DNA from: Lepidodermella squamata
Taxonomy: Eukaryota > Animalia > Gastrotricha
Length of the DNA stretch: 64,000 bases
Reading direction: 5' to 3'
Assembly (NCBI GenBank): GCA_047495785.1
Contig: JBLDXI010000031.1
Location: 620,001-684,000, forward strand
Below, piece by piece: positions 31,773 to 64,000 of this stretch. Position 1 is the stretch's first letter, and every line of letters begins with the position of its first letter. Made by a program: the position numbers and the translations under genes. The notes below the pieces were generated by a model. The model ran no database searches and was not told the DNA's origin. It saw only the letters and a program-made list of their open reading frames with translations.

Positions 31773-32423
31773 ATGGCATTGTTACCTATCGACTTGGCAA
31801 TCCTTGTGTTACCCTTTCTGTCTCTGGCCACAGCCCAGGAGGCCAATTCAACAGATATTTCCGACGCTCCTCTGCTGGATACAACAACCCAGGAAGCTAA
31901 TTCCACTGAATTCCTAGACACCCCACTGCTTGATACAACATTTATAAAGCAAGGCGCAGATACGAAGCAGAAAAGGTTTTCTGGTATCTGGTACGAAATT
32001 TACCGCCATCGGTCAATGTTTTACGAGTCTGGCATCAACAATTATGTTTTATGGCTATCAGACCAGGATGGCACGTTGAAAGCATCCGCTCAGGAGTATC
32101 TTCCATGGCGAGATCGCTGGGAAGGCATTACTGCAGTCGGACATCGAAGCCAGCGAGACCCTTCGTCCTACATCGTGAAATTTCTCGATTTCGCAACAAG
32201 CCCGCCCATGATAGTGAGAATCGCTGAGACTGACTACGAATCTTACGCGATAATTTACGCAGAAATGGACTACTACGGCGTTTATAAGAGCCGCTTCGGC
32301 TGGATACTGAGCCGGTCTCGTTTCATCAGCGATAAAATGGAGGACTATGCGTTTGAAATTCTTCAAAGCCAATACGGCCTAGATCGATCTGAATTCGTCA
32401 AAACCCGGCACACTTATTTGTAA
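31773..32423 (+). CDS. Secreted lipocalin
   Basis: Signal peptide; duplicated QEANST...PLLDTT; FSGIWY, ETDYE and GWILSR motifs. Confidence 0.9.
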   Translation: MALLPIDLAILVLPFLSLATAQEANSTDISDAPLLDTTTQEANSTEFLDTPLLDTTFIKQGADTKQKRFSGIWYEIYRHRSMFYESGINNYVLWLSDQDGTLKASAQEYLPWRDRWEGITAVGHRSQRDPSSYIVKFLDFATSPPMIVRIAETDYESYAIIYAEMDYYGVYKSRFGWILSRSRFISDKMEDYAFEILQSQYGLDRSEFVKTRHTYL

Positions 32424-32880
32424 TTTTGAGCAAACACCCATTTTTATTTGACGGCCCATGCTGTAAAGACGTGTTAATAAAGCTATTTTGTCAAATGAAA
32501 ACGGGTGTTTATGAAAAAACCGGGTTGTTATCGCAATCTTATTGTCAATCTTTATGAGGCTAAGGCTGACGTGTGTATGTATCACTGGCTGATAATATCA
32601 GCGTCTTGGGGCCTCAGTGCAGTCTTGGAGACAATAGCATGCGTCTCTGCCTATTGTGCTACTGCAGAACAATGGCAAGGTCGTGTTCGAGAGGCTGATG
32701 AGTTGTGTATTCTCATCCCGCTTGTCATTGATCTGTCATGAAGCAAAAACGCAGACCACAAGAGCTACTTGACCTGCGCATACAAAAATGGTCCCGGAAC
32801 CGAGGCTAATTAACCACCGGTATAAATACCGAAGAGGCAATCAGATTAATCCCGGTTGAGTTTCTTCCATTCAAAAAATC

Positions 32881-33475
32881 ATGAATTCTGCCATCGTTTT
32901 CCTCGGACTTCTTGTCGTTACTTGCTCTGCCTGGGATAGCAGCAAAGTAAGTGAATATGAAAGATCGAAATATCTACGTTTCATTTTGTTTTCAGACCGA
33001 TGATAAATTTGAGCCTGAGAAATACCTTGGTTCATGGTTTGAGGTCTATCGCCACAAAACAGTCGCTCTTTTCGAGAGGGGAACCGACAGCTTCGTGTCT
33101 TACATCAACCAGACTAATGGAACCTTCATGGCAGAGGCCAGAGATTACGATCCAGATAAAAAGCAATACACTGTCAAGCGAAATGCTTTTGAGTTGGACA
33201 AAGAGCAACCCTGGAAGTTGAATATCGAATACTCCGAGGCTATAACTGCCAACGCTACTGTCCTTGCTACAGACTACGAAAATTTCGCTGCGATCCATGT
33301 TGATGCATTGATTTTGAAAGCGTTGAAACAGACTTTCGGATGGATTTACAGCCGCAAGCCTAAACATCTAGATCAGAAATACATCGATCAAGCTTTTGCG
33401 GCTTTCAGCCGGGTTGGTATTCCTAAAGAAGATTTCGAGAAGACGCGCTTTGTTTTGGATTACGGAACAATCTGA
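32881..33475 (+). CDS. Secreted lipocalin (2 exons)
   Basis: Exons 32881-32946 and 32996-33475; YLGSWF, ATDYE, GWIYSR; TATAAA at 32821. Confidence 0.9.
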
Positions 33476-33642
33476 GAGTCTTGATACAAAGCGAGAGACG
33501 GTTGTCAAGTGACAATCGAAAATAAAGAAAGCGCACTACCTTAAAAAGTGTTTTGTAACATATCACTAGACACACTTAACTTTGCACCAGGATACACCCA
33601 CCCCTGGATTTTTATTCATTCAAAAGCAGAAAAGCAGTAGCT

Positions 33643-34339
33643 ATGGACGAATTTCTCAGTATTATTCTGTTATATGCCTTGTCACTAAATAATACGAGTA
33701 ACCCAGCAATTCAGAGCTTACAAAATATCCAATCGAACACGTTTATGAAAGTAAATTCAGTTTTAACCATAGATTCCTGTGCCTAATTCTCCTTTTCAGC
33801 AGCCTGTTGTACAGCAATCAGTACAAACAGTAACACCAGCCGAGAATTTTGAGCTTTCGCGGTTTCTCGGAGCCTGGCGGGAGATTTATCGCCACAAAAA
33901 CGCAAGATTTGGCTATGGAACAGATAACATCGTGATCTTCTCGAATAATTACGATGGAACGCTACAAATGGAGCGCAGGCAATGGCTGGCGGACCATAAC
34001 AGGTGGGAAATTGGGCGAGATATCTTGCTTATAGACTCGAAAGACTCGAGGCATATGCGAATCTACAATTCGCCATTCAACAACGCGACAGTCACTGAAT
34101 TACGAGTTCTTGAGACTGATTACGCCACTTATGCTCTTGTTGTTGTTGAATCGTCGATTTACAACGCCTACAACAGCAAATATGGCTGGTTGCTGTCTCG
34201 TCTTCCCAGCCTGAGTGAAGATTTTGAGAAGCGATGCCTGGATAAATTGGCTGAACGCGGAGGAATGAATCGGTCGGATTTTGTCAAAACTGAACAACTC
34301 CTGAAAATGTTTGATCTGTTCAATTTGTTTAAGGTTTGA
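33643..34339 (+). CDS. Secreted lipocalin (2 exons)
   Basis: Exons 33643-33750 and 33800-34339; FLGAWR, ETDY, GWLLSR. The stop codon lies inside the foldback arm. Confidence 0.85.
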
Positions 34340-34919: not shown

Positions 34920-35527
34920 ATGAAAGCAGTGTTTCTATTAGCTGTTTTCGCATCAATCGCCGATAATTCCGATTGCCTCTATCACGCTGTGAGATTTGAA
35001 CAAAACAATCCTACTAATTTCATCGAATTCCTTTACAGGACTCTGAGAAGCCATTCGATGTTTATTCTTATACTGGCAAATGGTACGAAATTTATCGAAC
35101 GAAAAACATCCCATACGAGTCTGGTACCGACATCTCAGCGACTTATAGCTTGAGCTCGAACGGCGTTACGCTAAATGTCTACAACGAACAATATCTGCCT
35201 GATTCTAAAACTTGGGACACTATGAGGGGAGTTGCGTATCAAATCGACCCTTACCACCCGACGCATCTAGCTGTTCGCTTCTCGCCCTGGCTCCGGCCTG
35301 GCGTCTTTCAAGTCCTAGGCACGGATTATGATAACTATTCGGTTGTTTATGGCGAGAGAATTGTGAGCGGGCAGGTTGAGAAGATTGCATGGGTCCTGGC
35401 TCGGACTCCTCAGGCGAGCTACAACGATCTCAGATCAGCATTTGATTTGCTAGGTAACACTGTTGGACTGAGCGAGAGTGATTTCACGAAAACAGCACAA
35501 GGAGTTGCGCCTCTCAATACTCATTGA
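34920..35527 (+). CDS. Secreted lipocalin (2 exons)
   Basis: Exons 34920-34988 and 35039-35527; FDVYSYTGKWY, GTDYDN, AWVLAR. Confidence 0.88.
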
Positions 35528-35902: not shown

Positions 35903-38070
35903 ATGACTAGTTTCTTGAACGGAGCGTTGCTCTTTGTTGCCTTGCCACTTTTGGCAACGTGCCAACCTCAGTGGGCTCGCCAAAGCGGGCCTGTTGCTGA
36001 GGTTCCGGTTAACCTCAACATCAAACTTCAAGAGAACTTCGATGTCAAACGCTATGTTGGTCAATGGTACGATCTCTACCACTCAAAAGGCCTACCCTAC
36101 CAGAACGGAACCGACGTAACCGCAAATTACACCCTCAACGCCAACAACACCCTGACAGTTTATAACAAGCAATGGATAAACGCGTCGAACACCTTTGAGG
36201 CTATCATTGGCCTTGCGAAGGTTGTGAACGCCAGCCAGCCGGCTAGGATGAACGTTCAATTCCCTGGCTTCTCGCCGGGCGGTGACTACAGGATCCTGTA
36301 TACTGACTACGACAATATCGCCCTGGTCTACAGCGAGTTTTCAGTGTTCAATCGAACAATCAAGTACGGGTATATCCTGGTCAGAAGTTTGGATATCAGT
36401 GAAGACATGATCGATATGGCCTTTGACATTTTCCAAGAACGAACTGGTTTAACGGAAGATTCTTTCGAGAGGACGAAATTTGGCGTCGCGAGGAATAACA
36501 ACGTGGTTGTTAGGGTAGCTCCACCAGGTTTCACGAGCTATTACGACCCGAGGGGCAATCCAACAGCACCCCGAGGAGAGATTCCAGATTTCGTCCGACA
36601 AATGATGGGAGGCAATAATGCTGATATGGCTGGAATTCCTGATTTCGTTCGTAACATGATGAACGGAGGGGGGAAGGTAAGTATACATTAAAAAGCTTTC
36701 TCCGAGTTAATTTTCTGTTTTCAATGATTAAAGCCTCCTGGTCAGATGCAATTCCCAGCTGCGAACTACACTTCGCTCGATATCCCTCTGCAGCCGAATT
36801 TCGATAAGACAAAATATATGGGCCTTTGGTACAACGTCTACTACACACCGAATATGCCCTTCCAAAACGGAACTGACGTCACAGCGAACTACACTCTCAA
36901 CCCAAATGGTACAGTTGTTGTATTCAACCGTCAATGGTTAGTCGAAGCTAAGCGATGGGACGAAATCCGTGGCTTAGCTTGGGTCCCGAATGCCACACAA
37001 CCAGCTCGTTTGATCGTTGGATTCCCCGGCTTCCCATCTGATGGCGACTACCGGGTCCTGTACACCGACTACGACAACATCTCCCTCGTCTACAGTGAAT
37101 TTTCGTTGTTCGGCAAGGTTTACAAATACGCCTGGTTCTTATCGAGAACTCAAAACCCGTCTGATATGCTTGTCAAGCGGGCGTTTGAGATTTACAAGAT
37201 CAGGACTAATTTGACCGAAGCTAACTTCACGAAGACGAGGTATGGCGTTGCGTCGACCAATGCATCAGCTGTCATGACTGCCCCACCCGGTTTCCGAGGC
37301 TTCTACACCCCAGATCCGAACAGCCGTGGGGCAGGCATTCCTGATTTCGTGAGAGACATGCTTGGAAGTGGCGGCCAGATTCCTGATTTTGTCCGTCAAA
37401 TGCTTGGAGACAAGGTAAGCTTTTCAAATTTTTCTGGAGGTTTTCAATAATTTGAACGAAATAATTATAGTCTGGCCCCGGTTCTCCGCCTCAATTTCCT
37501 CCAGTCATCCTGACAGGACTAAACATCTCTCTTCAGGAGAATTTCAACAAAACTCGTTATGCTGGACTTTGGTACAACATCTTCTACACCCCGAATATGC
37601 CCTTCCAAAACGGGACTGATGTAACGGCAAATTACGGCATTAATGCTGATGGAAGTGTCAACGTCACAAACAGGCAATGGTTTGTCGAAGCTAAGCGTTG
37701 GGATATCATTCGAGGTAAAGCTAGAGTTGCCAATGCAAGCAGACCCGCTCAGCTAATCGTCAGTTTCCCCGGTTTCCCTGATGGCGACTATCGAGTCCTG
37801 TACACAGATTACACTAATATCGCCCTGGTCTACAGTGAATTTGAAGCCTTTGGAAAGACAGTTAAATACGCGTGGTTCCTTTCGAGGACGAAAAACCCTG
37901 ACCAGAGCCTTGTTGATTACGGCTTCAGAATCTATCAGTCCAAGACTGGTTTGACGAAAACGGATTTCAAGAAAATAGAATTCGGTGTTGGATATGGCGA
38001 TGACGCTGTAGTCATGACCGCTCCTCCAGGTTTCCGTGGATACTACACGCAATCTTCTCGGTCCTCGTAA
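35903..38070 (+). CDS. Triple-domain lipocalin (3 exons, one domain per exon)
   Basis: Exons 35903-36676, 36734-37414 and 37471-38070 with phase-0 introns; IPDFVRxM linkers; TATA near 35853. Confidence 0.85.
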
Positions 38071-38250: not shown

Positions 38251-39004
38251 ATGACGTTGTCAGCACACATTATTTTTGGGTTCTGTATTTGGGCTCTTTG
38301 CATCGTAGACCTAGCAACGGCTGCACGAGGATACGAGCCATCGGTCGATCAAAGCCGTGAGATTTTGAAGTTGGACCAAAGGATTCCCGATGACGTTCGC
38401 AACATGATGAACCAGATGGTAATTTGCTGTATGGCTTTAAATAATTGATGTTAAGTTTTATTATAATTGTGAATAGACCAAGCCTGTTCAAATGCCTCCC
38501 TTTCCCCCGCCAATAGAAACAGGACTTGATATCCCTCTTCAAGAGAACTTCAATCTAACCAATTTTCTCGGTCGTTGGCATAACGTGTATTCTACACCGA
38601 ACATCCCTTACCAGAATGGGACTGCTATCACCTTTCTTTACAGCATTGGGGACGATGGATATGTGTCTATAGCTAAACGTCAGTGGTCTTCAGACGCACA
38701 GCGCTGGCAGGTCGCTCGAGGCATGGCGAGAAGTTACAATGACACGAGACCGGCCCATCTTGTAGTTAGCTTTCCCGATGACTTCGAAGGGGATTTTCGA
38801 ATCTTGCATACGGATTACGACAACATCGCGCTGGTTCACAGTCAGTTTTCACTATATGGCCTTATTACAAATTATGGCTGGTTTCTATCTCGGTCTTGGC
38901 CTCTTCATCAGAAGTGGTTGGACGAGGGCTTCGCTATTTTCGAGAACAGGACTGGTTTGACATCAGCTGATTTTGTGAAGGTGGAGCAAAGTGCGGGAAA
39001 ATAA
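38251..39004 (+). CDS. Secreted lipocalin (2 exons)
   Basis: Exons 38251-38418 and 38477-39004; FLGRWH, HTDYDN, GWFLSR. Confidence 0.87.
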
Positions 39005-39339: not shown

Positions 39340-40089
39340 ATGTTTTCACTTTGTGTAGCCCTTTCTTCGATCGCGCCACTTCTGGTAGCTTCGCAGCCCG
39401 ATTGGCGAGGCCAAAGCGATGTTCCACTTGGTATGGGTCCTCAGCCTCCAATTCGTGGCTTTGTGAAGAATATGTTTGACAATGGCAATGGCCAGATGCA
39501 AATGCCGCCAGTTACCTACACGTCACTGGACATGCCCCTTCAACCTAACCTCAATAAGCTGAGATACATGGGTCTCTGGTACAACATCTACTACACACCG
39601 AATATGCCTTTCCAAAATGGCACTGACATCACTGCAAACTACACCCTCAACAAGGATGGATCTATTGTAGTGTTCAACCGCCAATGGCTCGTCGAGGCGA
39701 ATAGATGGGAGGAAATCAGAGGATCGGCAATCGTTACTGATGAAAACCAGCCTTCAAGACTTAACGTTAGCTTCCCTGGGTTCCCATCTGGCGAGTATCG
39801 CGTTCTTTACACGGACTACTCGAACATCTCCCTGGTTTACAGCGAATTCTCAGTGTTTGGCAAAGTCTTCAAATACGCCTGGTTTTTGTCTCGCACTATC
39901 AATCCACCGTACTCTTTGGTGAGACTCGGATTCGAGGTCTTTAGGGTCAGGACGAAACTTACACCGGCCGATTTCGTACTCACAAGATATGGCGTTGGCT
40001 ATGGCTCGAATTCCGTCGCCATGACAGCTCCGCCCGGTTTTCAAGGCTATTACACCGCAGATCCGAGGATTGGAAATTACAGGAACTGA
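39340..40089 (+). CDS. Secreted lipocalin (intronless)
   Basis: Signal peptide; YMGLWY, YTDYSN, AWFLSR. Confidence 0.9.
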   Translation: MFSLCVALSSIAPLLVASQPDWRGQSDVPLGMGPQPPIRGFVKNMFDNGNGQMQMPPVTYTSLDMPLQPNLNKLRYMGLWYNIYYTPNMPFQNGTDITANYTLNKDGSIVVFNRQWLVEANRWEEIRGSAIVTDENQPSRLNVSFPGFPSGEYRVLYTDYSNISLVYSEFSVFGKVFKYAWFLSRTINPPYSLVRLGFEVFRVRTKLTPADFVLTRYGVGYGSNSVAMTAPPGFQGYYTADPRIGNYRN

Positions 40090-40405: not shown

Positions 40406-42526
40406 ATGCTTTCTCACACGTTACTAGTTTTGGCCTTTGCGCCAATTGCCGTATTTGGCCAGCCAGAATGGGTGAAACAAATGTTGGCGAATGGTGGCGG
40501 GCAAGGTGGGGATCAATCCAACAAGTTGTCCTTTGAACCGGTTCCAATCAACACTGACATCCCACTTCAGAGAAATTTCGATCTTAGACGATACACTGGT
40601 ATATGGTACGATATCTACCATACGAAGAACCTCCCATTCCAGAACGGAACTGATAGTGTTGCAAACTACACATTGAACCCGAATGGAACCTTGAACTTGG
40701 ATGGCAAGCAATGGACAGTTGAAGCGCAAGCATTCGAGCGTTTGATTGGTCTTGCGACGCCCAAGGATCCAGCTAAGCCAGAATTCCTGATTGCGACTTT
40801 CCCTGGTTTCCCCGGTGGAGATTACAGAATCTTATACACTGACTACGACAACGTCGCTGCAATTTTCAGCAATTTCCGAACTTTAGGTCAAGATGTGCTG
40901 TACGCCTATATCAACGCTCGTATGCTGGACCCACCTCAGGAGAAATTGGACGCAGCTTTTGCTGCATTGGCGAAGATTGGAGTTACCCGAGATATGATGG
41001 AGAAGGCTCGGCATGGCTACGCTACAAATAACCGAGTAATCATGCGAACACCAGAGCCTGGTTTCACTAGCTACTACGACACTAACAACCGGAGAAATAA
41101 CGCAAGCCAAAGCGGCATCCCAGACTTTGTTCGTAACATGATGGGCAACAACTCAGGTGGGGGAATTCCAGATTTTGTTCGAAATATGATGGGAGGAGGA
41201 AACGGGGCTCCACAAATGCCACCCTTCAACCCGACGTCACTTGACCTCCCTCTCCAGCCAAATTTTGATAAGACGAGATACATGGGGCTTTGGTACAACC
41301 CGTATTATACCAAAAACATGCCCTTCCAGAACGGGACTGATGTCACCGCGAACTATACGTTGAACCCAAATGGCACAGCTGCTGTTTTTAATCGCCAATG
41401 GAATCGAGAGAATAGATATTGGGATGTCATTCGTGGTATCGCTCGAGGAGCTGATCCGAACCAGCCAGCTCGGTTCATCGTTGAATTCCCTGGCTTCACT
41501 GGGGGAGACTACCGTGTGTTGTTTACTGACTACGACAACATCGCCCTTGTCTATAGTGAGCAGAACTATTTCGGGAAAATCGTGAAAAGCGCTTGGTTCC
41601 TATCGCGAACACCGACGCCCAGTGAAGCTAATGTGCGGCGAGGATTCGAAATCTACCGCAACCGAACTGGCCTGATGATGAATGACTTTGTGAAAACTGA
41701 GTTTGGAGTAGGAACCGGTAATAGAAACATCCTAATGACACCGCCGCCAAATTTCCAGGGCTACTACACCTCACCTCGACCGGTTAATATCGAAAGCATT
41801 CCACTTCAAGCGAATTTCAACCAGACAGCATATTTGGGTAAATGGTACGAGATTTTCCGTCATAAGAGGATACCATTTCAATCCGGGACTGACGTCACTG
41901 CAACTTACTCTTCAAACCCTGATGGCACGATCGGAGTATTGAATCGTGAATGGCTTTTGAACGATAAGAGATGGACCCAAGTCAGAGGGTTTGCTCGGCC
42001 CGTTTCAGGGGCTAGGTACACCGTTCAGTTCGCCCCGGGTGCTCCGCCAGGTGACTACCGAGTTCTCTACACAGATTACGAGACCATGTCTGTGGTGTAC
42101 AGCGAATTTCAACTCGGTCCATTCAAGTCTCAGTACGGTTGGATTCTGTCCCGAACTCCTGAGTTGAGCGACAATAACATCGAGCTGGCTTTCAATCTAT
42201 TGGCGAAAACTGGCTTGACTAAGGATGATTTCTTCAAAACCCCGCATGGTGTAGGAGGCGATTCTGGATCGCAGCTAGCCGGTGGGGAAACTCCTCCCCC
42301 GCTTCAGAGGCGTCTATTGGTAGGCCGGGAGAAGTGTACTTATCAGCTGCCGAGTACAACTTGCGAAAAAAATCTTCAACCGCCATTGATTGTGTACGAC
42401 ATAAATACAAACCAGTGTGGTCTGCAGCTGACTGGTTGCGACAATTCTCCGATTGAGCCATATGCGTTTTCGAGTGCTGATGAGTGCTTCAGAACGTGCA
42501 TTCTGCAGAGACCTGGACGTAACTGA
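40406..42526 (+). CDS. Triple lipocalin with C-terminal Kunitz-like domain (intronless)
   Basis: 706-aa ORF with three GxWY/TDY/SR motif sets, then C-x8-C-x17-C-x6-C-x15-C-x3-C ending AFSSADECFRTC. Confidence 0.9.
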   Translation: MLSHTLLVLAFAPIAVFGQPEWVKQMLANGGGQGGDQSNKLSFEPVPINTDIPLQRNFDLRRYTGIWYDIYHTKNLPFQNGTDSVANYTLNPNGTLNLDGKQWTVEAQAFERLIGLATPKDPAKPEFLIATFPGFPGGDYRILYTDYDNVAAIFSNFRTLGQDVLYAYINARMLDPPQEKLDAAFAALAKIGVTRDMMEKARHGYATNNRVIMRTPEPGFTSYYDTNNRRNNASQSGIPDFVRNMMGNNSGGGIPDFVRNMMGGGNGAPQMPPFNPTSLDLPLQPNFDKTRYMGLWYNPYYTKNMPFQNGTDVTANYTLNPNGTAAVFNRQWNRENRYWDVIRGIARGADPNQPARFIVEFPGFTGGDYRVLFTDYDNIALVYSEQNYFGKIVKSAWFLSRTPTPSEANVRRGFEIYRNRTGLMMNDFVKTEFGVGTGNRNILMTPPPNFQGYYTSPRPVNIESIPLQANFNQTAYLGKWYEIFRHKRIPFQSGTDVTATYSSNPDGTIGVLNREWLLNDKRWTQVRGFARPVSGARYTVQFAPGAPPGDYRVLYTDYETMSVVYSEFQLGPFKSQYGWILSRTPELSDNNIELAFNLLAKTGLTKDDFFKTPHGVGGDSGSQLAGGETPPPLQRRLLVGREKCTYQLPSTTCEKNLQPPLIVYDINTNQCGLQLTGCDNSPIEPYAFSSADECFRTCILQRPGRN

Positions 42527-44291: not shown

Positions 44292-46408
44292 ATGTTTTTA
44301 CAAACTTTTATCACCAACTGCATTCTTATTGCTGCCACAGTCTATGGCCAAGGTGAGATTCCGGACTTCGTTAAGAAGATTCTAGCTGCTCAGAATGGAA
44401 CAATGCCCACCGGTTACACGTTCAACCCTACGAATCTTCAGATACCACTTCAGCAAAATTTTGATAAGGCACGGTATATGGGCCTATGGTACAACACTTA
44501 CTACACTGTGGGCATACCGTTTCTAACCGGTTCAGATGTCACGGTTGAGTACACGTTGAATGCAAACGGAACTGTAGCTGTTTTGAACCGGCAATGGAGC
44601 AAAGAGGCGAATCGTTGGGAATATATATCTGCGATAGGAGCCGACCCTATGCAACCAGCTCGTCTCATCGTTCAATTCCCAGGATTTCCACCGGGCGACT
44701 ATCGAGTATTATACACTGACTACGACAACATCGCCGTGGCCTATTGTGAGGAGACTTATGTTGATAAAATGCTCAAAACTGGTTGGGTACTAACTCGGGT
44801 GCCAAAGCCAGACGAAGCGCTTATTCGACGTGGATTTGAGATTTTCCTCAATCGAACAGGTCTAACTCGAGACGATTTCGTGAAAACAGAGTTTGGTCTT
44901 GCGACGAATAGCGATAGTTATCTCATCACTCCACCGCCCTTCTTCCAGGAATTCGTTCTTCCTAAAACGGATCGCCAAGCTGAGATTCCGGACTTCGTTA
45001 AACAGCTGCTAGCGGCATCGAAGAATGACTCAAAGCTTATCGGGAATGTGTACGATACTACAAATCTTCAAATACCGCTTCAGCAAAACTTCAACAAAAC
45101 GCGTTACGCAGGGCAATGGTACAATACTTACTACACCAAGGATATACCATTTCAAAACGGCTCAGATGTCGTGGTTAACTATACGCTGAATGCAAATGGA
45201 ACAGTCACCGTTTTAAACCGGCAATGGACTAAAGAAGCAAATGTTTGGGAATATATTCGCGGAATCGCCCGAGGAGCAGACCTTGAGCAACCAGCTCGTT
45301 TAATCGTTCAATTCCCCGGATTTCCAGCTGGTGACTATCGAGTCTTGTATACTGACTACGACAACATCGCCGTGGTATACAGTGAGGAGTCCTACTTTGG
45401 TAACATCGTGAAAACCGGCTGGGTGCTAACCAGAGTGAAAAACCCTGACGAAAAGCTTGTTCGACGCGCTTTCGAAATTTATCGCAATCGGACCGGTTTG
45501 ACACGTGATGATTTCGTGAAGACAGAATTTGGCCTTGCGAAGAATAATAACAGTGTTTTGATCACTCCACCGCCCTTTTTCCAGGGGTATTACACAACGC
45601 CGAAACCTGATCGCCAATCTGATCTGAATCTACAGCCGAATTTCAATGTGACAGCTTACGCTGGTACTTGGTACCAACTCGCTAGGACGGAAGATATTCC
45701 ATTCCAAGTTAAGGACGCAACGGATACGGTTCTCGAGTACACTGTAAACGGAAATGGACTCTAACCATCAACAATCGAGAATGGCTGCCGAACGCCAACC
45801 GCTGGCTTCTAGCTGCAAGCTTGGCCACTCAAGTAGAAAATGCGCGGTTCGTAGTATCAATGGGTCCCGATAGTCCTACTGGTGACTATCGAGTTTTATA
45901 CACGGATTATAAAACGATGGCTGTTGTCTTCAGTGAGGATGAGTATCAAGGCTTCAAGGCATCGGGCGCTTGGATTTTGAGCAGGACGACACAGCTCTCA
46001 GACGAGCTTTGGCGTGATGCTTATCGCAGATTGGACGAGCGTGGCTTCAAGTGTTATACTTTCTTGAAAACGAGGCATGGCCTTGCTAACATAACAACGC
46101 AAACTGTTGCGAAGAACCAAACAGGTCAGCCATTTGTATAATATCCTGAACTCGGCTAATTTTCAAGTTTTTCAGAAAAATGCGCCTATCGCCTAACAAC
46201 TGGTAACTGCCCGAATCCTGGTGATATAGGGACTTACGTGGTGTTCAACGCGAATTCAGGAAGCTGTGAGTTGGTAAAGCGGGCTTGTGACGTGGAAACA
46301 TTGACGATTTACGCCTTTGAAAATCAACTGCAATGTGAGAACGCTTGCACTCGTCGCCGAGGAAATACGGGGATTGGTGACAGCGGGATATTGCAAGTCA
46401 GCGGTTAG
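44292..46408 (+). CDS. Triple lipocalin plus Kunitz-like domain, with a 1-bp frameshift near 45759
   Basis: Exons 44292-46124 and 46176-46408. Adding one A at GGACTCTAA restores GTLTINNREW. The last exon reads KCAYRLTTGNC...AFENQLQCENAC...LQVSG. Confidence 0.8.
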
Positions 46409-51844: not shown

Positions 51845-52798
51845 ATGTCTTTCGGAAAACGTTTGATTCTGCTTGCTCTGATCAACCTAGCGAGTTGCCA
51901 GGAAATTCCCGATTTTGTAAAGCAACTCTTGGCTCAACGTGGTGGATCGGCAAATGGAGGAAGCTCCGCTATGGTTGCGAGCGCATATTCCACCCCTGAC
52001 AACAGTCTCCAGCCAAATTTCGACAAAACAAAATATGCTGGAACCTGGTATCAAATCGGTCGAACCAACAACATGCCGTTCCAAGCGAAAGGCTCAACGG
52101 ATACTACAGCAACTTACACCCTGAACGAGAATGGAACTGTAACAGTTTTCAATAGAGAATGGCTACCGGATACAGGTAGATGGTTGGAGGTGCTGGGCAT
52201 CGCTGTTCCTAGGGGCAACGCAAGATTCATTGTCACTTTCGGACCATACAGCCCACCTGGAGATTACAGAGTTATCTACACCGATTATAACTCGATTTCG
52301 CTGGTGTACAGTGACGTGAATTACATGGGCTTCCAGGCGAAATACGGCTGGATTTTAGCCAGATCGCCTCAGATTTCTAATGACTTGATCCAAGATGCTT
52401 TCCGGCGATTTGAACAGCGAGGTTTGAGCCGTAACCTTTTCGTAAAAACCCGGCAAGGCGTCGCTGGCACTGCATCTAATACTCAAAATCTCAACCGCGA
52501 TCAATCTTGTATGTTATTTTTTACTTTATCTTAAAAAACATTGACCCTTGGTTCATTTGCAGATAAATGCCGGTTCCAAGTGCCGAAAAATTCCGACCCG
52601 CGTTGTACGGACTTTGTTGGCAATTTTGTGTTGTATGATCCGGAAACTCGGCAATGTGGCATTCTGCGCCGGGCTTGCGAGATTGACACAATTGTTAATT
52701 ATGCCTTTTCCACACTTCAGGAATGCGAGAGCATTTGTATCCTGAGGCGAGGTTCCAGTTCAAATAACAGTTTCGGCAATCTGTTCGTCGCAGGATGA
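51845..52798 (+). CDS. Lipocalin plus Kunitz-like domain (2 exons)
   Basis: Exons 51845-52508 and 52563-52798; TATAAAA near 51794. Confidence 0.88.
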
Positions 52799-53498: not shown

Positions 53499-54462
53499 AT
53501 GCTGACTGTTATTCTTCTCTTTCTTACGCCAAGTCTCGTGCATGGGCAAGATCCTTTGGGTCGGTTGATTGCCCAACAGCCGAAAATTGGCGGCGTCTGG
53601 CTTCAATTATCTTTCGACCTCCAAGCCTATTCAGGCACATGGTTTCGAATCGCCCGATCTGATAACATGCCCTTTGAAGCAGCTGGTGCTACCGATATCA
53701 CTGCCACTTACACTTTGAACAGCAATGGCACTGTCGCCATAACAAACCGAGAATGGTTGCCTAATCTCAACAGATGAGAGGTCAACAGTGGTAGCGCGGC
53801 CTTCTTGGGCGATGCCCAGTTTTTAGTCCGATTCGACGCAACAAGCCCGCCTGAAGAGTACCAAATTCTACACTGACTACAAAACAATATCCTTAGTCGA
53901 TAATGAGGTTTTCTACTACGGCTTTTCAGCAAAATTCAGCTGGATCTTGGGCCGATCGATTCAGGTTCCCGCTGCGATGATGGAAGACGCTTTCAGGCGG
54001 ATCGAAAAGAGAGGCCCCAGCCCGTCTACTTTCGTAAACACTAGACATGGCGTTGCTCCCCCGGTTCCACTAACGCAAACCTTCAATCGTGATCATTATT
54101 GTGAGTCCTTTGAATCAAAGTAGCTTTGACGAAGTGGGCCTCAATGAGAGCTTGCCCTCTTTCACATAAATTGAGTGGAAGCATCAAACGTAAAATTTGT
54201 AATCATCCTTTGGTAATTTTCAATCTATTTTACAGATAAATGCTCTGTCGTAGTTCCGGAATACGACCGGCTGTGTCCTAATAATCTAGGCGAGCTCATT
54301 CTTTACGACTCAAAGACGCGAAGCTGCGGCACGCTACGGCAATCGTGCTCATTCGAAACGCTAGCCTACTACGCGTTCGCAACACGCGAAGAGTGCGCTA
54401 ATACGTGCATCTTTAGACTTGGCAACAACATCGCGGGATCGCCGCTACCCATCACCGGTTGA
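53499..54462 (+). pseudogene. Pseudogenised duplicate of the 49294 lipocalin-Kunitz gene
   Basis: TGG>TGA at 53775 and a 2-bp deletion near 53868. The Kunitz-like exon 54236-54462 is intact. Confidence 0.85.
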
Positions 54463-55073: not shown

Positions 55074-56332
55074 ATGGCTTCAATCAGCCTGATTTCCGCC
55101 GTCTTGGCGCTCGTTGCCTCGACTCAGGCGCAATGGAACTTCCCTCGTGTAAGTATTGATTTTTTGAAAGAGAACTTCATTTCCTATTCAAATTAATTCA
55201 TCAGACACCCGGCAGCCCGATCCCAACTCAGCCAAATTTTGACATTACAAGCTTCTTGGGACAGTGGTACGAGATCTACCGAACCAAGGCGATACCCTTC
55301 CAGTCCGACTTCGTCTCTGATGTCACCTACACATTCAGTGCCAACCCGAACGGAACTGTTACCGATAAGCTTAAGGAGTGGAGGACAAACGAGAACCGTT
55401 GGAATGAAGTTAACATGCTCGCCGCACCTACTAACGCCGATGCCCCAGCCATCTGGACTGTTATGATCCCCAACTACGGCTCAACCATCAGCCTCTACGT
55501 TCTTGCCACAGATTACACCAACATCGCGATCCTTTACTCTGAGCAGACTGTTAACGGTGCCCTGACCAAGTACGCCTGGATTCTCGGACGTAACAACACT
55601 CTTGCTGATGCTGTTGCTGCTGGCGCTTTCGCCCTCGTCCGCCAAGTCGGTGACCTCTCGCCAACCAACTTCCAGCGCACTCTCTTCGGTGTTGCCCCTC
55701 TTCCGCGTAAGTCTTCAATAAAATTATAAAATTGATCCAAGTTTGATCCATCCTCTCGATCTCGAATTGATCTTGGCCTTTGATTCTTCTTCATAAATTT
55801 CAGATCCAAATTTGATCTAAATGTTTATCCAAATTTGATCCGAATTTTGAACCAAATTTGATCCACCTAAACAAGTTAATCCGAAAGTGATCGTTGTATC
55901 TAATTTCTTAAATAATAATTTTTCTGTACGTTCTTAGCAATTCCTGCCCCCGCGCCTGCTGGTTTCGTCCCTACCTGGAACAATCCTCAGCCTCAGCTCG
56001 CTCCTCTCCAGCAACAGGCCCCAGCTGCCCCAGCGCCAGTGCCGGCTCCAGCTCCAGTCGTTGCTCAGCCCCAGCAGCAGCCGCAACAGCAACAGCAGGG
56101 CCCCTTCAACTTCTTGAGCGGCTTCCCCAACTTCCTCCAACAAGGTGCTCAACCTCAGCAACCACAGATGATGCAGCAGCCCCAGCAACAAACACAACAA
56201 CAGCAACAGCCAAACCAGGCCGATTGGTTCAACCCCTTCAACCAGCTGCCCCAGGCGACGCAGAACGCGAATCCTGGCCAAAACGGCTTCCTGCCCGCCG
56301 ATTTCTTCAACACCCTATTCCCGGCCAATTAA
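55074..56332 (+). CDS. Lipocalin with a Gln/Pro-rich low-complexity tail (3 exons)
   Basis: Exons 55074-55148, 55205-55706 and 55938-56332. Confidence 0.85.
55728..55866. repeat. Degenerate AAATTTGATCC tandem repeats in an intron
   Basis: About 7 imperfect 11-bp units. Confidence 0.6.
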
Positions 56333-56604: not shown

Positions 56605-58166
56605 ATGGCTTGGTCCAGTTTCGTCGTTTCGCTGGTAATGCCCCTGTTGACAGCCGCTCAGCCACAATGGACGAATATTATGCAACAAAACCAACCGCAA
56701 ATGACCCAGCAACAGCCTCAAATGCCACCACCGTCTTCCATCCCGCTTCAGCCTGATTTCAATTTACAAGCGTTTAGCGGGAGATGGTTTGAGCTATACA
56801 GGACGAAAAATGTTCCAACAATGCTGCAAAACCCTTCAGATATAAATATCATTATTACCCCGTTCCCCAACGGCACAATTGGCTTCAACAGCCGAGAATG
56901 GTCGGCAACTGACAATCGATGGGCTGAACGGCCTGCAATGGGCTGGATTTTGAACATGGCCGAGCCAGCTCGATGGGCTGTTCAGTTTTTGGACTCGATG
57001 TACCCAGTTGATTGGCGCATTGTCTCGACCGACTACGCTAATGTTGCGGTGGTCTACAGCGAATTCACGGCTAACGGCGTGACGACGAAACTTGTGTGGA
57101 TCTACGGCAGGAAGACCTCAATTACCGATGACATTGCAGCGGCGGCCTTCGCCATGATCCGGCAACTGATTGACCTCTCACCAACGTCTTTTCAACGGAC
57201 GACCCATGGCCTCTCGACCGCAGCAGCAGGTTAGCTATGGAATATCAGATTTCCTTTCCTTTCCTTTCCTATCCTTTCCTTTTAGCATTTCCATATTTCA
57301 TATGAATTGTTCCATAATTTCCATTTCAATCCTTTCCTAGCACATGTATTTTTCCTATTCGATACTTTCCTATATTTTTCTTCTACTATCTAACTGGAAA
57401 TTCAAATTGAGTTGCTAAGTTCTGGTGTATGTTTTCAGCCCCAGCTGCACAGCCTGCTCAACAGCCTGTACAACAAGCTCCCCAGCAGCAAATGCGGCCC
57501 CAACAGCAACCAGTCATGCAACAACAGCCTGTGCAACAGCCGCAACCAAGCTGGTTCAATCAGCAACAACCAGACCAGTGGCAACAACAGCAGCCTGTCG
57601 CCCCGCAACAACAACAACAACAACAGCCGGCAACATTTCAGCAATTCCCAGCTCAACAGCAGCCCGCTTTCCCATCCCAGCAGCAACAGCAGGGTTTCCC
57701 TAACCAGCAACAAGGCTTCCCAGCTCAGCCGCAGCAACAGGGATTCCCTAACCAGCAGTACAATCCTTATGCTAACTACAACCAAGACCCGATGATGCAG
57801 CAGCAGCAACAGTTCCCTCAACAGCCTGTTCAGCAACAACAGCCACAAGCAGCACAGCAGCCGGCACAGCAACAGCAACAGCAACAGCCTGTTCAATCGC
57901 AGGCCCAACCAGCGCAGCAGCAGCCTGTTCAACCGACAATCGGTGGCCTCAACGCTCCGTTCGGAAATTTGCTGCCTAAGACGAACGCTTTCCCAACTCA
58001 GAACATGATGCCGCAGAGCGGCTGGCTTCCGTTCAATAACCAAGGCAGTGGACCGTTTGCTGCTCAGCAGAATGCGCCGACACAATCAGGATCACTTGCT
58101 CAGGGACAACAACCCTCCGGCCTGTTCCCCGACATCTTCGGCTCGCTTTTCGGAGGCCGCAGTTGA
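56605..58166 (+). CDS. Lipocalin with a long Gln/Pro/aromatic low-complexity tail (2 exons)
   Basis: Exons 56605-57229 and 57439-58166; QQQGFP and QQPVQ repeats. Confidence 0.85.
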
Positions 58167-58373: not shown

Positions 58374-59775
58374 ATGAAGAGCCTGATTTTGCAGCTGTGC
58401 CTTTTCGGCGTGTCGCAGGTGTTCGGCCATTATGACAGCCACAGCCATGAGTACTTCTATTACCCGTATCCAAGGCTCAGATGGGTTAATGAACAGCCTT
58501 GGAGACTCGATAACACCAACGGAAGTTCCTCAACAGGTACGAACAATCCAGGCTCTGGATCTAACTGGCCTTCTGGCAGCAACTTGCCAGGCCAAAATAG
58601 ACCAGGTTCGAATGTTCCGGGCAGCTCCGGGCAGAATCCAGGGCCTTCCGGCCCAGGGTCAAACTGGCCTGGAACTTCAGGGCAAAATCCAGGTCAATCA
58701 TGGCCAGGCGGTAATCAGGCTCCAAGTCAGAATTGGCCATCGGGGCCCGGCAACGCTGGGCAAAATCCCGGTCAGAACTGGCCATCGGGGCCTGGATCGG
58801 CACCTGGCTCAAATTTCCCTGGGCCTAACCAGCCATCTGGACCCGGGGGTTCTAATTGGCAGGGTGGGAATCAGGCTCCAGGCGGTGCTGTTCCAGGAGG
58901 ACAGTGGCCATCTGGCCCTGGTTCTGCGGGAAATAATTGGCCAGGTGGTAATCAGAACCCCGGAGGTAATTGGCCAGCAAACCCGGGCCAACAATTTCCC
59001 CCAGCAGGTGGTAACCAAGCGCCAGGATCTAACTTCCCGGGTGGGAACCAAGCCCCAGGTCAAAACTGGCCATCAGGCCCAGGAGGAAACCAAGTACCTG
59101 GTTCAGGCTGGCCAGGATCGAATCCTGGGCAAAACTGGCCCTCGGGTCCTGGCGGTTCAAACCAAAACCCTAGTGGTCCTGGAGGTTCTTGGGGCTCTGG
59201 ATCTGGATCTGGCTCGGCTTGGCCTTCAGGTCCTGGCGGTTCAAACCCTAGTGGTTCGGGAAGTTCTTGGAACTCCGGCTCATCTTGGCCGGGTTCATCG
59301 TGGCCAGGTTCGGCATCAGGTTCTCGTGGTAGGAATTCAACCAACTCAACATGCAACTGGCCGTGGTTTCACCATCATCACGATGATTCAGACTCAAGCT
59401 GGGACGACTCTGACGGTTGGCCCGCTCGCCGTACCGCTACTTACAGGAGCAACAACGGCAACAATGGCGCCCCGATCACAACCCCGACTACAACGAGAGG
59501 TTTTCCACTTACAAATTGTACTAACAAAGGTTTGTTTATGACTTTATAGCCGGGTATCGCATTCGTCGCCATGCCTATTACCAGTGGCCGGTTTACCGAA
59601 TGAACACCTACCGGAGCAACAATGGCAACAACGGGGCCCCGTATACAACTCCAACAACAACTCGAGGTCTGTTTTTTACCTGATCTCTCAAGCTTAAGTC
59701 TTTTCGATAATAGCCGGCTATCGAATCAAACGACGAGCCAACCGGCCAGTCCAGATGAAGCAAAGCAACGAATGA
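58374..59775 (+). CDS. Secreted Gly/Pro/Ser/Asn/Trp repeat protein with duplicated furin-flanked C-terminal modules (3' end uncertain, possibly 59867)
   Basis: Signal peptide MKSLILQLCLFGVSQVFG and GQNWPSGPG-type repeats. Predicted exons 58374-59499, 59550-59666 and 59714-59775. Confidence 0.7.
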
Positions 59776-60092: not shown

Positions 60093-61127
60093 ATGAGATT
60101 TTGCCCGGTGCGATGCTGCTTGATTTACGTGTTCCTCGCAGCGGTTGTAGAATCGACAATTTTTGGTAAGCACCTCAAACAGTCTCATGGGTCGCATGTA
60201 TCCTAAAATAAATATGAAAATTGCCCACATTCCAAAGATACCCAATATAGGTCTCTCTCGATTCGGAATTTAGTGAAGCGCCAAGCGTCGGATATTCGGG
60301 TCCAGCCGAACTTTGATTTGCGAGCTTTTACCGGCCTTTGGTTCGACATCTACAGAACGAATACTAGGTCACTGTTCAGCCAAGCTGTTAGCGATATTAC
60401 GTCAACGTATACTGTGAATGTGGATGGAACAGTGAATGTCGTCGATCGGGAATGGTTGATGAATGACAACAATTGGCTCATTGCCAATGGTTTTGCTAAA
60501 TCTGTATCCAACGCAAGGCTTCTGGTCTACTACGATAAGGTTTATGCTCCGTTGGACTTCAGGGTTTTATACGTCGAGTACAACAACCTAGCTGTGATTT
60601 ATGGCGAGGAGACGTTGAATGGGAATACAGTGATGAAGTACGCAAGGATTCTCGCGAGATATCCGGATCTTGAGGATCTTGAGTTGGATAGGGCGTTCAA
60701 CGTCATCCTGAATAGGACGACTTTGAAGAACAACAATTTCGTGAAAATCAGGCATGGTGTTCGAGGCTATCACATACCCACTACGAAAATTCTTGATTTC
60801 CCTTTCATTCCCTACACGAGGAGGAGTGTAACACCTGGTGCAACAACAAGCAAAATCATAACAGTGCCGCGTAAGTTTCTTAATTGTGACATTAAAACGA
60901 TGCTTTAATGCTGCATTTTAGCGACCAATGTGAATGATCGGTCGTTCAAATGCGAGTACCGACCTGAGTCGATGGTTTGCAGGACGCTGGATCGGTTCAT
61001 TGTTTTCAACAGCACCCAACAGGAATGTGTCATTCGAACTTCTGGGTGTTCTCTGTTGAATGACGTGCAGCGATTTGCGTTTACAACCTGGGAAGAATGT
61101 TTGCAGACGTGCGCTGCTGGAGCTTGA
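60093..61127 (+). CDS. Lipocalin plus Thr-rich linker plus Kunitz-like domain (3 exons)
   Basis: Exons 60093-60165, about 60238-60870, and 60922-61127. A VKR pro-site precedes the lipocalin domain. Confidence 0.8.
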
Positions 61128-61641
61128 ATTATCGCTTGATTTGTTAACGACTGATATCTTTGTAGTCAGAAAAATGTTTCATAGAATGAAATAAAAAGAC
61201 GAAAATATTAATCCTTCTTCCGATATTACTCAGTTTTTCAAAAACAAAACATTGCGGGCGAATTTGGCACTCAATTTACGATATCATAGCATACACAGGA
61301 AAGGATATGGAACATTTCACTCACTGAGGGACATTTCAACATTTATAGTTTTGGTTTCACATTTTTTCAATTTAATTTAGGGTCTCATTTGCCGATTCCA
61401 TTTAGGGACAAATTAGTATTTTTGTGAATAACATTTTTCTCAGAAATTCTCAGATATTCTCTTATTTCCGATTTTTGTTGACGAGCTCCATCAAAAGAAT
61501 TGAGACCACTTGTTCACTAGCGAAAATATGCGACCTCTTATAATTCATTCACTAAGATGTCAACAAATTATTAAAGTTAAGTGCTAGCCTGTTTAACTCT
61601 ATAAAGTTTGCACCCTCAATAATAAGATAACTGTAAGAAAC

Positions 61642-62715
61642 ATGAGTTTTACTCGACGTATTTTCAAGCTCTCTTACGCATTGCCTATTATCCTAGTAAC
61701 GAGTCTTGCTCTTGGAGAAGAAGGTATGCATTGTTACACCGAGATAATTCTTTACAATCTATCTTCATTGTTTTATTCACAATAGAAAACAATGCGGCAA
61801 GATTAGTTAAAAGAGATGCCTATCAAGAACCAATTCTTCTTTTCGAGAACTCTGGCCCGAAACTACAAGAGAACTTCAATCTGCAAGCATTCACTGGCCT
61901 ATGGTTCGACATTTACCGGACCAATACGAACTCGCTATTCAGTCAAGCTGTTAGCGACGTCACCTCAACTTACACAACAAACCAAGACAGTTCTGTGAAT
62001 GTCGTTGATCGAGAATGGCTGATGAACGACAACGGCTGGATGATAGCGAATGGAAATGCTAAGCCTATTTCTAATGCCAGACTTCTTGTTGATTACGACG
62101 GAGTGCCTACAGCTCTGGATTACAGGATTCTTTACACTGATTACCAAAGTATAGCTGTAGTGTATGGCGAGGTCACTTCATATGACGACAAAGTTACGAA
62201 ATATGCGAGAATTCTTGCGAGATACCCTGATCCGGATGAAGCGACGATTCAACGAGCTTTTGCTATCATTTTCTCGAGGACTTTGTTGACGAGGAATAAT
62301 TTCGTGAAAATCAGGCATGGAGTTCGAGGGACTATCATTACAACCACTCAAAATCCTGATTATCCGTTAGCTGAGATTGAAGCTACCACCAGTAAGCCGA
62401 TGAGCTCAGGCCCGAATGTTGACTTCGAGAATCTTTTCCATGCTGAGACAACTGAGCGGAGTGAGTTGACCAGATGTTAACGAAATTTCTTTGATTTTGC
62501 ATTATTTTTTAGTTACTACGACATCTGACAAGTCTTGGAAGTGCGCCTACAGGCCCCCGGAAAGCTCTTGCATGTTCCTTGGCCGATTTATTGTCTTCAA
62601 CAGTGAGGATCAACTATGCGTTATTCAAACATCGGGATGCAGTATGACCGATGTCCAGCGGCATGCTTTCACTTCTTGGGACGAATGTCAAGAAACTTGT
62701 GTTGCAGCGCCATAG
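61642..62715 (+). CDS. Lipocalin plus Thr-rich linker plus Kunitz-like domain (3 exons)
   Basis: Exons 61642-61723, 61786-62460 and 62513-62715; RLVKR pro-site. Paralog of the 60093 gene. Confidence 0.85.
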
Positions 62716-63459
62716 AAACATTTTACATGAGATTGTTTGAGCATGAAATTGGAATAAAATACTGAATTTGAATTCGTATTGCGGCGAACCAGCCCTTGAC
62801 ACTTCTTCATTTGCAGAATATGTCCTATGAGACAAGTGTTAGCAAATTAAACAATGGAAAAATATAGGAGCGACAATTCAGCAAGGACAATCGAGCTGGG
62901 AACTCTTCCGAAACCTACTAATCCACAAACCTTAGCTTGAATCTTATCAAATTCAGAGGAAATGTAAATCTTCTGCTGGAATGTCGCTTGCTGAACTGTC
63001 GGGATAAGAAAATTCTCGAAATAGCTGTTTGATTGCGTGATCTCAGAATTTTCACTTTTGTGCATTTTTGCCCAGCCTGATTATTGGCAACCTCAATTTT
63101 GACCGGCTATCTTCACGTTTTTAGGCGCCTGCTGCCGCGTATTTATCACCTCTTGAGATTTGACACTAAAAACACACGAGCACAAACAAGGGATTCTTGT
63201 TACAGGTGCGCGTTTCGGCTAGGTGTTAAGCCGCTTTACTTGCCAAGATTTTAGCTCAGCTACCAGCACTGCGTCATGATTATTAGGCGTTCGAGCGCAC
63301 CTACGACAAGTAATCTCCGGCTCACAGCAACCTGCTATAGCTGCTCATCAGTTTACAGCCGACAGTTTTCTTCTCGAGCCCTTGCCATTTCTTCTCGTAT
63401 TTTCGACTTCACTATAAATACACTGCTGTTTAACCACAAACATATTTTTTAATAGAAAG

Positions 63460-64000
63460 ATGTATACTGTGTTAGTTCTAGCGATTCTACCCTTAGCTTT
63501 AGCTCAGGTATGATCGATCAATTTTCCCTGAATTTTAATGATTTTCTGGGATTAACAGGAAGTCCCTGGCGTCGCAGATTTCGACGTCTCGCAATATGTC
63601 GGCTTATGGTACGAAGTCTACAAAACAAGGGGCATGCCATTTCAATCTGATGCGGCAACCGACGTGACAGCTCAATACACGAAGAACGAAAACGGAACTG
63701 TAACAGTCCTCAACAAGGAATGGCGGCCCTGGGAAAGCCGTTGGAGCTCAATGACCGGCCTCGCTACGCCTAACGCAACCGAATCTGGCGTATTCTCAGT
63801 CCAATTCCCTGGCAATCCAGTACCAGGAGATTACCGAGTCATTTCCACTGATTATTCAACGTATTCGATTGTATACAGCGTTAAGCGATACTGCTGGATC
63901 TTGTCACGTTTCACTAATATGACTGACGCTTTCGCTGCGACGTTGTTCGCGTTCATTCGAGAGAAGACCGATTTGAGGCCGTATCAATTCTTGAAGACGG
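63460..64000 (+). CDS. Secreted lipocalin (runs off window)
   Basis: Exon 63460-63507 (MYTVLVLAILPLALAQ) and an exon from 63559 reading DFDVSQYVGLWY...STDYS...WILSR; TATAAATA at 63413. Not in the ORF track. Confidence 0.88.

Follow-up and report, generated by a model that had tools for sequence, protein, structure and literature searches.

Tandem expansion, domain fusion and domain repetition are each known among lipocalins. In teleosts, ApoD genes have multiplied by tandem duplication into clusters of at most eight single-domain copies (PMC6325677). Vertebrate AMBP carries a lipocalin followed by Kunitz domains in one precursor, and the salivary lipocalins of ticks and triatomines, like the rodent major urinary proteins (MUPs), form large tandem families. 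Here we describe a tandem array of lipocalin genes in the gastrotrich Lepidodermella squamata (assembly GCA_047495785.1, contig JBLDXI010000031.1, written C31 below, with other contigs written likewise). The window, meaning the whole 64-kb stretch that was analyzed, is C31:620,001-684,000, and "extended" coordinates carry its numbering past 64,000 into the downstream DNA. The array brings together ApoD cluster expansion, AMBP-like fusion and polycalin-like repeats, each of a known kind. A preliminary description of the window took lipocalins to be usually single-domain; this has to be qualified, as multi-domain forms are known in the insect polycalins, midgut proteins with 9 to 18 lipocalin domains (PMC10145054).

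We interpret the array, with a probability of roughly 0.78, as an old, lineage-specific tandem family of putatively secreted ApoD-type lipocalins with modular C-termini that evolves by birth and death. The array itself is real, unusually large and modular. A profile made from 13 of the window's own lipocalin open reading frames (ORFs) and run on the six-frame translation found 25 lipocalin domains in the window, 24 of them on the forward strand (31,791-63,999) and one on the reverse strand (22,183-22,716). Gene models read from frames and splice signals place the 24 domains in 18 co-oriented genes between 31,773 and 64,000, separated by short spacers of 167-1,765 nucleotides (nt). Three of these genes are triple-domain (E, H and I), eight are fused to a Kunitz-type module (H, I, J, K, L, M, Q and R), and three have low-complexity tails (N, O and S). 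In the 20 kb of downstream DNA that was scanned, six more lipocalin genes extend the array by 11.4 kb to about extended position 75,420, and the whole array holds 24 lipocalin genes with 30 domains in 43.6 kb. It is by far the largest ApoD-type cluster that we found described, the teleost clusters reaching eight copies (PMC6325677), and no paper linking gastrotrichs and lipocalins was found in the literature searched. The preliminary description had listed 18 co-oriented lipocalin genes in 32 kb, a continuation past the window, one further gene at 22 kb and about 25 domains. The gene models return the same 18, the scan returns exactly 25 domains, and the extra gene was found on the reverse strand. 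Its single-domain, triple-domain, Kunitz-fused and low-complexity-tailed forms were all recovered as well, the Kunitz part being of a divergent type that lies below the Pfam cut-off. The count of 18 stands, but not the intactness of every copy, since two of them (M and I) are damaged. Elsewhere in the genome there are smaller lipocalin clusters on the same contig, at C31:423-429 kb and 806-810 kb, and at least 47 matches to PF08212 in all.

The gene models, listed in Table 1, were built from reading frames and splice signals, and a local script was used to check the open frame of each join; exons, not joined spliced proteins, served as queries in the searches. Every model begins with a short hydrophobic leader, as judged by eye. 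Introns are 49-285 nt long, with GT..AG ends, GTAAGT-like donors and YAG acceptors, and in all spliced models other than I and M the frame stays open up to one stop at its end, so that 16 of the 18 frames are intact. Each lipocalin domain is one uninterrupted exon, and introns are confined to three places: behind the signal exon, between domains and ahead of the C-terminal module. The damage in gene I is a 1-nt frameshift near 45,757 in the third domain, and in pseudogene M a TGA at 53,775-53,777 replaces a conserved Trp and a 1-nt frameshift lies near 53,868.

The identity of the lipocalin domains is well marked. A Pfam scan covered 20 ORFs between 31.7 and 62.5 kb, and all lipocalin candidates match PF08212 (Lipocalin_2), PF00061 (Lipocalin) or both, nearly all above the curated gathering score. 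The three Lipocalin_2 stretches of gene H reach E = 3.2e-50 and 170 bits; gene O has a borderline ORF, with 23.4 bits where the cut-off is 24. Across 50 domains of this genome, the G-x-W motif and the Arg of SCR3 (structurally conserved region 3) are conserved at 100% and T-D-Y at 92-96%; these motifs and the sequence family are shared with the ApoD/Lazarillo/Blc clade. The closest solved structure to a profile of 19 domains is human ApoD (2HZQ; E = 5.3e-35, 123.7 bits), followed in the PDB by sandercyanin (84 bits), Blc (77 bits; E about 1e-20), plant TIL, crustacyanin and RBP, with AMBP chains reaching only E = 7e-9. Among named proteins, fish ApoD comes nearest, with about 41% identity. The first matches were bacterial, but a bacterial origin was rejected as the poorer reading, as ApoD scores far above Blc and fish ApoD is nearer in the tree. 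In that tree, made with FastTree, the lipocalin domains of this genome group apart from both fish ApoD and bacterial Blc.

ApoD has conserved intramolecular disulfides, and metazoan lipocalin genes are multi-exon, with introns inside the domain. The array departs from ApoD in both respects: Cys reaches 50% in none of the alignment columns of the 50 domains, and the domain is a single exon. It further differs in its extra N-terminal IPDFV motifs and its C-terminal modules. The array lipocalins are thus best classed as ApoD-type, without the ApoD disulfides and without introns inside the domain.

The Kunitz-type module has six Cys residues that are invariant across 32 family members, with the spacing C8C17-18C6C15C3C as compared to C8C15C7C12C3C in BPTI. 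Profile matches of the eight window modules to the PDB were to Kunitz domains in 20 of 23 cases, the best being TFPI (E = 1.5e-3). An hhalign comparison of the 32 members with 19 canonical Kunitz domains of this genome gave a probability of 94.9% (E = 4.3e-8), in an alignment that runs from Cys2 to Cys6 with a 3-residue insertion. AlphaFold2 models of the module had a predicted local distance difference test score (pLDDT) of 81-82. With such a model, roughly the top 50 Foldseek matches were all Kunitz, at E values of only 0.045 or weaker, and VIA-align, which is independent of Foldseek, returned 22 Kunitz structures among 24 matches at Z of 2 or more, led by bikunin (1BIK; Z = 5.2, root-mean-square deviation 2.9 Å over 56 residues). 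Because the PDB profile matches, hhalign and the matches of the predicted fold all point to Kunitz, we class the module as a divergent Kunitz-type domain that forms a family of its own.

With the Kunitz/BPTI family (PF00014) the module shares six Cys in the same order and a fold of a β-hairpin and a C-terminal helix. It differs in its spacing, in its score below the Pfam cut-off, in its largely non-basic P1 residues and in the lack of a GNxNNF motif. In the eight window modules, the amino acid that follows Cys2, at P1, reads E, E, P, P, T, P, R and M, and the P1 loop is 2-3 residues longer than in canonical Kunitz domains. The family has at least 95 copies in the genome, at loci apart from the at least 152 copies of PF00014, and none of the 152 PF00014 matches lies in the lipocalin array. 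Most copies of the module family sit in multi-domain, putatively secreted proteins arranged in large arrays; the large arrays are at C31:1.49-1.54 Mb and C10:1.67-1.92 Mb, and further loci are at C10:861-862 kb and on C13, C16 and C103.

The junctions between these parts are still visible in the gene structures. Wherever a C-terminal module has an exon of its own, be it six-Cys domain or tail, a phase-1 intron that directly follows the lipocalin exon leads to it, and the same phase-1 junction is found in a ninth lipocalin-Kunitz-type fusion at C31:806.5-807.4 kb. This is the pattern of exon shuffling. The introns of gene E are of phase 0 (57 and 56 nt) and lie directly after IPDFV[RK]xM[ML] linker motifs, in the position of the intron that follows the signal/IPDFV exon of the single-domain gene F, and these matching positions suggest that triple-domain gene E came from neighboring genes joined into one.

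Clades in the domain tree follow position and architecture; the broken domains of I and M were read through with X for the trees only. Genes A to C form one clade, and the IPDFV-linked domains form another, in which E1 falls by H1, H2 by I1 and I2, E2 by G, and E3 by F. The Kunitz-adjacent domains of J, K, L, M and I3 cluster, and Q and R fall together. Among tailed genes, N groups with O, S with T, U to X with one another, and Y with the gene at 22 kb, whose sisters in the tree are L014 and Y. The three triple-domain genes are of mixed ancestry, which speaks for repeated joining and for recombination between neighbors.

Three processes are legible in the sequence itself: whole-gene tandem duplication, the joining of neighboring lipocalin units into triple-domain genes, and exon shuffling at the conserved phase-1 intron. 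The shuffling attaches either a Kunitz-type six-Cys domain, drawn from the genome's own family of at least 95 copies, or, as the alternative C-terminal module, a low-complexity tail rich in Q, P, G and N with aromatic residues. Purifying selection keeps the copies while a few decay, which is birth and death.

Matching architectures occur in other organisms. The query for a broad protein library search was the contiguous third-domain and Kunitz-type part of gene H. The search yielded two contiguous lipocalin-Kunitz-type proteins from other organisms: P0056 (Logan, 272 amino acids [aa]), which is 48% identical over query residues 3-249 in one stretch, and P0071 (ENA, 257 aa). A triple lipocalin, P0046 (526 aa), and a lipocalin with a Q-rich tail, P0077, came from other samples. 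P0071 falls with Q and R in the tree, P0077 with S, T, N and O, and P0062 and P0067 are also in the tailed clade. Since relatives with matching architectures lie inside clades of the array, the architectures predate this species. Apart from one two-domain lipocalin of a different species, P0005 (348 aa; Logan SRR32069677 contig, 1,109 nt), word-index protein searches returned only relatives with a single domain of ApoD/Blc type. At the DNA level P0005 shares about 68% identity with the two-domain gene of this genome at C15:774.8-775.8 kb, and so the two-domain form has been kept across species. A metagenome scan with gene H found no relative, and the ESM Atlas gave only weak leads with scores of at most 0.81, the sole lipocalin and Kunitz cluster listed there being chordate AMBP.

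Like AMBP, the fused genes carry a lipocalin and then a Kunitz-type domain in one predicted secreted precursor, encoded by a single exon in H and by open spliced frames in J, K, L, Q and R, and bikunin, the top structural match of the module, is itself part of AMBP. However, AMBP combines an alpha-1-microglobulin-type lipocalin with two canonical Kunitz domains, whereas the array combines an ApoD-type lipocalin with one divergent module, and no R-x-x-R site was seen between the parts of gene H. Moreover, the AMBP-like fusion is present here as nine paralogues. Given the ApoD-type lipocalin, the single divergent Kunitz-type module and the lack of R-x-x-R in H, the fusion of the array is most probably independent of AMBP and convergent with it. 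No paper on AMBP-like fusions in invertebrates was found in the literature searched.

The insect polycalins, which are membrane-associated, resemble the array in having several lipocalin domains per polypeptide, and polycalin-like proteins, such as one of Leptosia nina (3,464 aa, 18 matched stretches), were the top matches of the broad library search. These insect matches are distant (29-35% identity), and the array has at most three domains per protein, joined by IPDFV and PPPGFxGYYT linkers. The array arose within the lineage's own clade, and two of its three triple-domain genes carry a Kunitz-type end.

The copies in the array are old and constrained, being under purifying selection. In pairwise Nei-Gojobori comparisons, all pairs of array copies show synonymous divergence (dS) that exceeds 0.7 or is saturated; the ratio of nonsynonymous to synonymous divergence (dN/dS), where measurable, is 0.10-0.23, and no positive selection was seen in these comparisons. 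Pseudogene M differs from K by a dS of 0.74-0.91, with dN/dS of 0.16 and 0.39 for its two halves. The lipocalin domains of the window are 19-77% identical in pairs, with a median of 36%. With identities this low and dS at or near saturation, the copies are not assembly duplicates, as the preliminary description had argued from their strong divergence. Its proposal of birth and death is borne out by one pseudogene (M), one frameshifted gene (I), clades that follow position and architecture, and the age of the duplicates. The likeness that it drew to the salivary lipocalins and MUPs holds only in part. Those are also large tandem families with birth and death, and they encode secreted proteins, as the array putatively does, but they are single-domain, usually young or fast-evolving and of known secretion, whereas the array is old and modular, and its purifying selection does not fit fast turnover.

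That the array is an artefact of assembly duplication or a graveyard of mostly dead copies is so improbable that we set it aside. The assembly was probably made from amplified DNA (PMC11660948), 2 of the 18 genes are damaged, and near-identical contig pairs exist elsewhere: C28:1.52 Mb resembles C33:0.52 Mb, and C25:2.30-2.37 Mb resembles C26:0.59-0.65 Mb. One lipocalin pair across contigs is 99% identical (dS 0.11), and some Kunitz matches have identical scores. These pairs look like uncollapsed haplotypes or very recent segmental duplications, and genome-wide copy counts, which were taken over the 121.2-Mb genome of 151 contigs, are therefore slightly inflated. No near-identical twin of the C31 array was seen elsewhere in the assembly. 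Assembly duplication is ruled out by the saturated or near-saturated dS between all neighbors, and the intact frames, the low dN/dS and the matching architectures in other organisms also speak against an artefact or a graveyard.

Some points do weigh against an old family of putatively secreted, modular ApoD-type lipocalins. No window module exceeds the PF00014 gathering score, the best reaching 15.9 bits against 21, and only three of the eight match at E of 10 or less. Classical trypsin-type protease inhibition by the module appears doubtful, because its P1 position does not hold the basic residue of classical trypsin inhibitors. The eight-stranded β-barrel with a C-terminal helix is a predicted fold, taken from the end-to-end alignment to 2HZQ, and the leaders were called by eye. 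The FastTree phylogeny has SH-like (Shimodaira-Hasegawa-like) supports, with many weak deep nodes and thin outgroup sampling. A sequencing error may lie behind the frameshift in gene I, given the probable use of amplified DNA (PMC11660948). The functional half of the interpretation, finally, is drawn from knowledge of the family.

Table 1. Lipocalin genes of the array and other features of the window and the downstream DNA (positions above 64,000 are extended coordinates)
Feature	Position	Strand	Description	TATA at
PAN/Apple-like genes	676-11,442	-	Long, putatively secreted; PAN/Apple-like Cys modules with Thr-rich linkers	
Class C GPCR-like ORF	15,678-18,092	-		
Flanking block, left copy	22,000-25,900	-	Three genes	
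Lone lipocalin gene	22,021-22,761	-	245 aa; low-complexity tail ending NNWPFNTK; PF08212 E = 1.8e-14	
Class C GPCR-like ORF	26,354-28,688	-		
Gene A	31,773-32,423	+	Single-exon, single-domain lipocalin, 216 aa, signal-like leader	
Gene B	32,881-33,475	+	Signal exon, 49-nt intron, lipocalin exon; 181 aa	32,821 (TATAAAT)
Gene C	33,643-34,339	+	Signal exon, 49-nt intron, lipocalin exon; 215 aa	
Gene D	34,920-35,527	+	Signal exon, 50-nt intron, lipocalin exon; 185 aa	
Gene E	35,903-38,070	+	Triple lipocalin, three exons of one domain each; 684 aa	35,852
Gene F	38,251-39,004	+	Signal and IPDDVRNMM exon, 58-nt intron, lipocalin exon; 231 aa	
Gene G	39,340-40,089	+	Single-exon lipocalin, 249 aa	
Gene H	40,406-42,526	+	Intronless; signal, three lipocalin domains, Kunitz-type six-Cys module (42,329-42,523); 706 aa	40,361
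Gene I	44,292-46,408	+	Three lipocalin domains, 51-nt phase-1 intron, Kunitz-type exon (46,176-46,405)	44,239
Gene J	47,419-48,487	+	Lipocalin, 172-nt phase-1 intron, Kunitz-type exon; 298 aa	47,339
Gene K	49,294-50,409	+	Lipocalin, 285-nt phase-1 intron, Kunitz-type exon; 276 aa	49,243
Gene L	51,845-52,798	+	Lipocalin, 54-nt phase-1 intron, Kunitz-type exon; 299 aa	51,793
Gene M	53,499-54,459	+	Pseudogene, old copy of K; Kunitz-type exon (54,236-54,459) still open	
Gene N	55,074-56,332	+	Signal exon, lipocalin exon, 231-nt phase-1 intron, Q/P-rich low-complexity tail exon; 323 aa	
Gene O	56,605-58,166	+	Lipocalin, 209-nt phase-1 intron, Q-rich tail exon of about 240 aa; 450 aa in total	
Gene P	58,374-59,549	+	Tail-only, putatively secreted, G/N/P/S/W-rich, between O and Q; 391 aa	
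Gene Q	60,093-61,127	+	Signal exon, lipocalin exon, 51-nt phase-1 intron, Kunitz-type exon; 291 aa	
Gene R	61,642-62,715	+	Signal exon, lipocalin exon, 121-nt phase-1 intron, Kunitz-type exon; 296 aa	61,600
Gene S	63,460-64,000, on to 64,281	+	Signal exon, 51-nt intron, lipocalin and N/Q/P-rich tail with FFWPF; 256 aa	63,413
Cathepsin L-type cysteine protease	67,398-68,462 (C31:687,398-688,462)	+	Between T and U	
Flanking block, right copy	74,600-83,200	+	Three genes	
IPDFV motif sites	36,600-36,676; 37,340-37,414; 38,380-38,418; 41,100-41,200; 44,350-44,380; 47,480-47,510; 51,910-51,940			
Gly-closing ends of I, J, K, L, M	46,385-46,405; 48,465-48,484; 50,385-50,406; 52,775-52,795; 54,440-54,459			

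Several smaller features accompany the genes. The motif IPDFV[RK]x[ML][ML] with a Gly-rich stretch precedes most lipocalin domains of E to L and is often doubled between domains, and many of the same domains are followed by PPPGFxGYYT. In the J-M clade, all the proteins fused to a Kunitz-type module close with a short hydrophobic stretch and Gly (LQISG, LPIIG, LFVAG, LQVSG and LPITG). The tail-only gene P has NWPSGPGG-like repeats and is without a lipocalin domain; neither it nor the tail of gene N has a Pfam match. On either side of the array lies one copy of a block of three genes (WPF-tailed lipocalin, ankyrin-repeat gene and kinase-like gene), the product of an old inverted duplication; the two copies share 40-65% aa identity (tblastx). 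The lone gene at 22 kb is a paralogue of the last array gene, Y, and is 65% identical to extended 74,588-75,196 (tblastx). The left third of the window contains PAN/Apple-like mucins, class C G protein-coupled receptor (GPCR)-like ORFs, ankyrin repeats and a kinase-like gene, and the neighborhood of the array is rich in putatively secreted and receptor genes.

As for what the array may do, the lipocalin cups would bind small hydrophobic ligands outside the cell, and the C-terminal module would set the destination of the carrier or what it holds: a Kunitz-type module would lead to a protein partner such as a protease, and sticky tails to matrix, secretion or condensate. The array may be an undescribed modular extracellular carrier system, in which exchangeable C-terminal modules, either a private Kunitz-derived binding domain or sticky tails that phase-separate, would send ApoD-type cups to different destinations. 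Such a system would build or maintain a lipid-containing gastrotrich biomaterial, either the layered cuticle and scales or an adhesive, with the AMBP design invented a second time; we offer this tentatively, as an idea that is unlikely to prove right in full. The gland-specific secretome of the preliminary description, whose genes would be co-expressed in a single secretory organ (adhesive tubes, for example, or pharyngeal or salivary-type glands), is possible, although the odds are against it. All products have secretory leaders by eye, tight co-orientation and short spacers would suit co-expression, the array also holds the tail-only protein P and a putatively secreted cathepsin L, and the Q/P/G-rich tails with aromatic residues resemble adhesive or coating proteins. 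Nine of the 19 window array genes carry TATAWA 42-80 nt ahead of the start codon (scored from -85 to -35), when about 1.4 would be expected from the intergenic motif density (binomial P about 3e-6); the seven TATA positions named in the preliminary description are all present within 1 nt, and K and R were added to them. TATA is thus found in only about half of the genes and is mostly missing from the downstream tailed genes T-Y, which speaks against one common regulatory program. A k-mer search found no promoter motif common to all 25 array genes beyond TATA and A/T runs, and GTAAACA, present in five array promoters, is no more frequent than the null allows. The age of the array and its purifying selection also set it apart from the fast-evolving salivary expansions.

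Lipid handling in the cuticle, where the carriers would deliver or hold lipids in the layered cuticle or scales and the modules and tails would anchor them, is likewise an unlikely reading. The gastrotrich cuticle has lipid-like lamellae, the genes join ApoD-type lipid carriers to matrix-like tails, and many constrained copies would fit a bulk or structural use, but the tails contain no known cuticle motif (no Pfam match) and the reading is purely inferential. A role in defense or scavenging is less likely again: the lipocalins would sequester microbial or dietary small molecules as siderocalins do, and the Kunitz-type modules would regulate proteases, possibly the cathepsin L of the array. 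That gene, whose product joins an I29 propeptide to a Peptidase_C1 domain (E = 4.6e-76) through a Thr-rich linker, lies among the lipocalin genes, and non-basic P1 residues would fit a non-trypsin target. Flatworm Kunitz-type proteins, those of Fasciola, that inhibit cathepsin L and not serine proteases may offer a precedent (PMC5016662, PMC7692546). The module, however, has loop insertions relative to canonical Kunitz domains, and a single neighboring protease gene is weak evidence. Least likely of these functional readings, and in our judgment very improbable, are perireceptor carriers for chemical sensing, akin to odorant-binding lipocalins or MUPs and serving the nearby chemoreceptor-like genes. 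The two class C GPCR-like ORFs and the pocket diversity implied by the median identity of the domains would suit such carriers, but triple domains, Kunitz-type modules and long sticky tails are foreign to odorant carriers, and the linkage may be coincidental.

Lipocalins are textbook small single-domain carriers, and here one ancestral ApoD-type gene appears to have become a modular toolkit in a barely studied phylum, with the exon-shuffling junction still legible in the DNA and the same architectures kept in other organisms. If the tissue and the ligands are found, the array could explain how gastrotrichs make a lipid-rich covering or an adhesive, and it could provide protein engineers with natural lipocalin cups that carry targeting modules.

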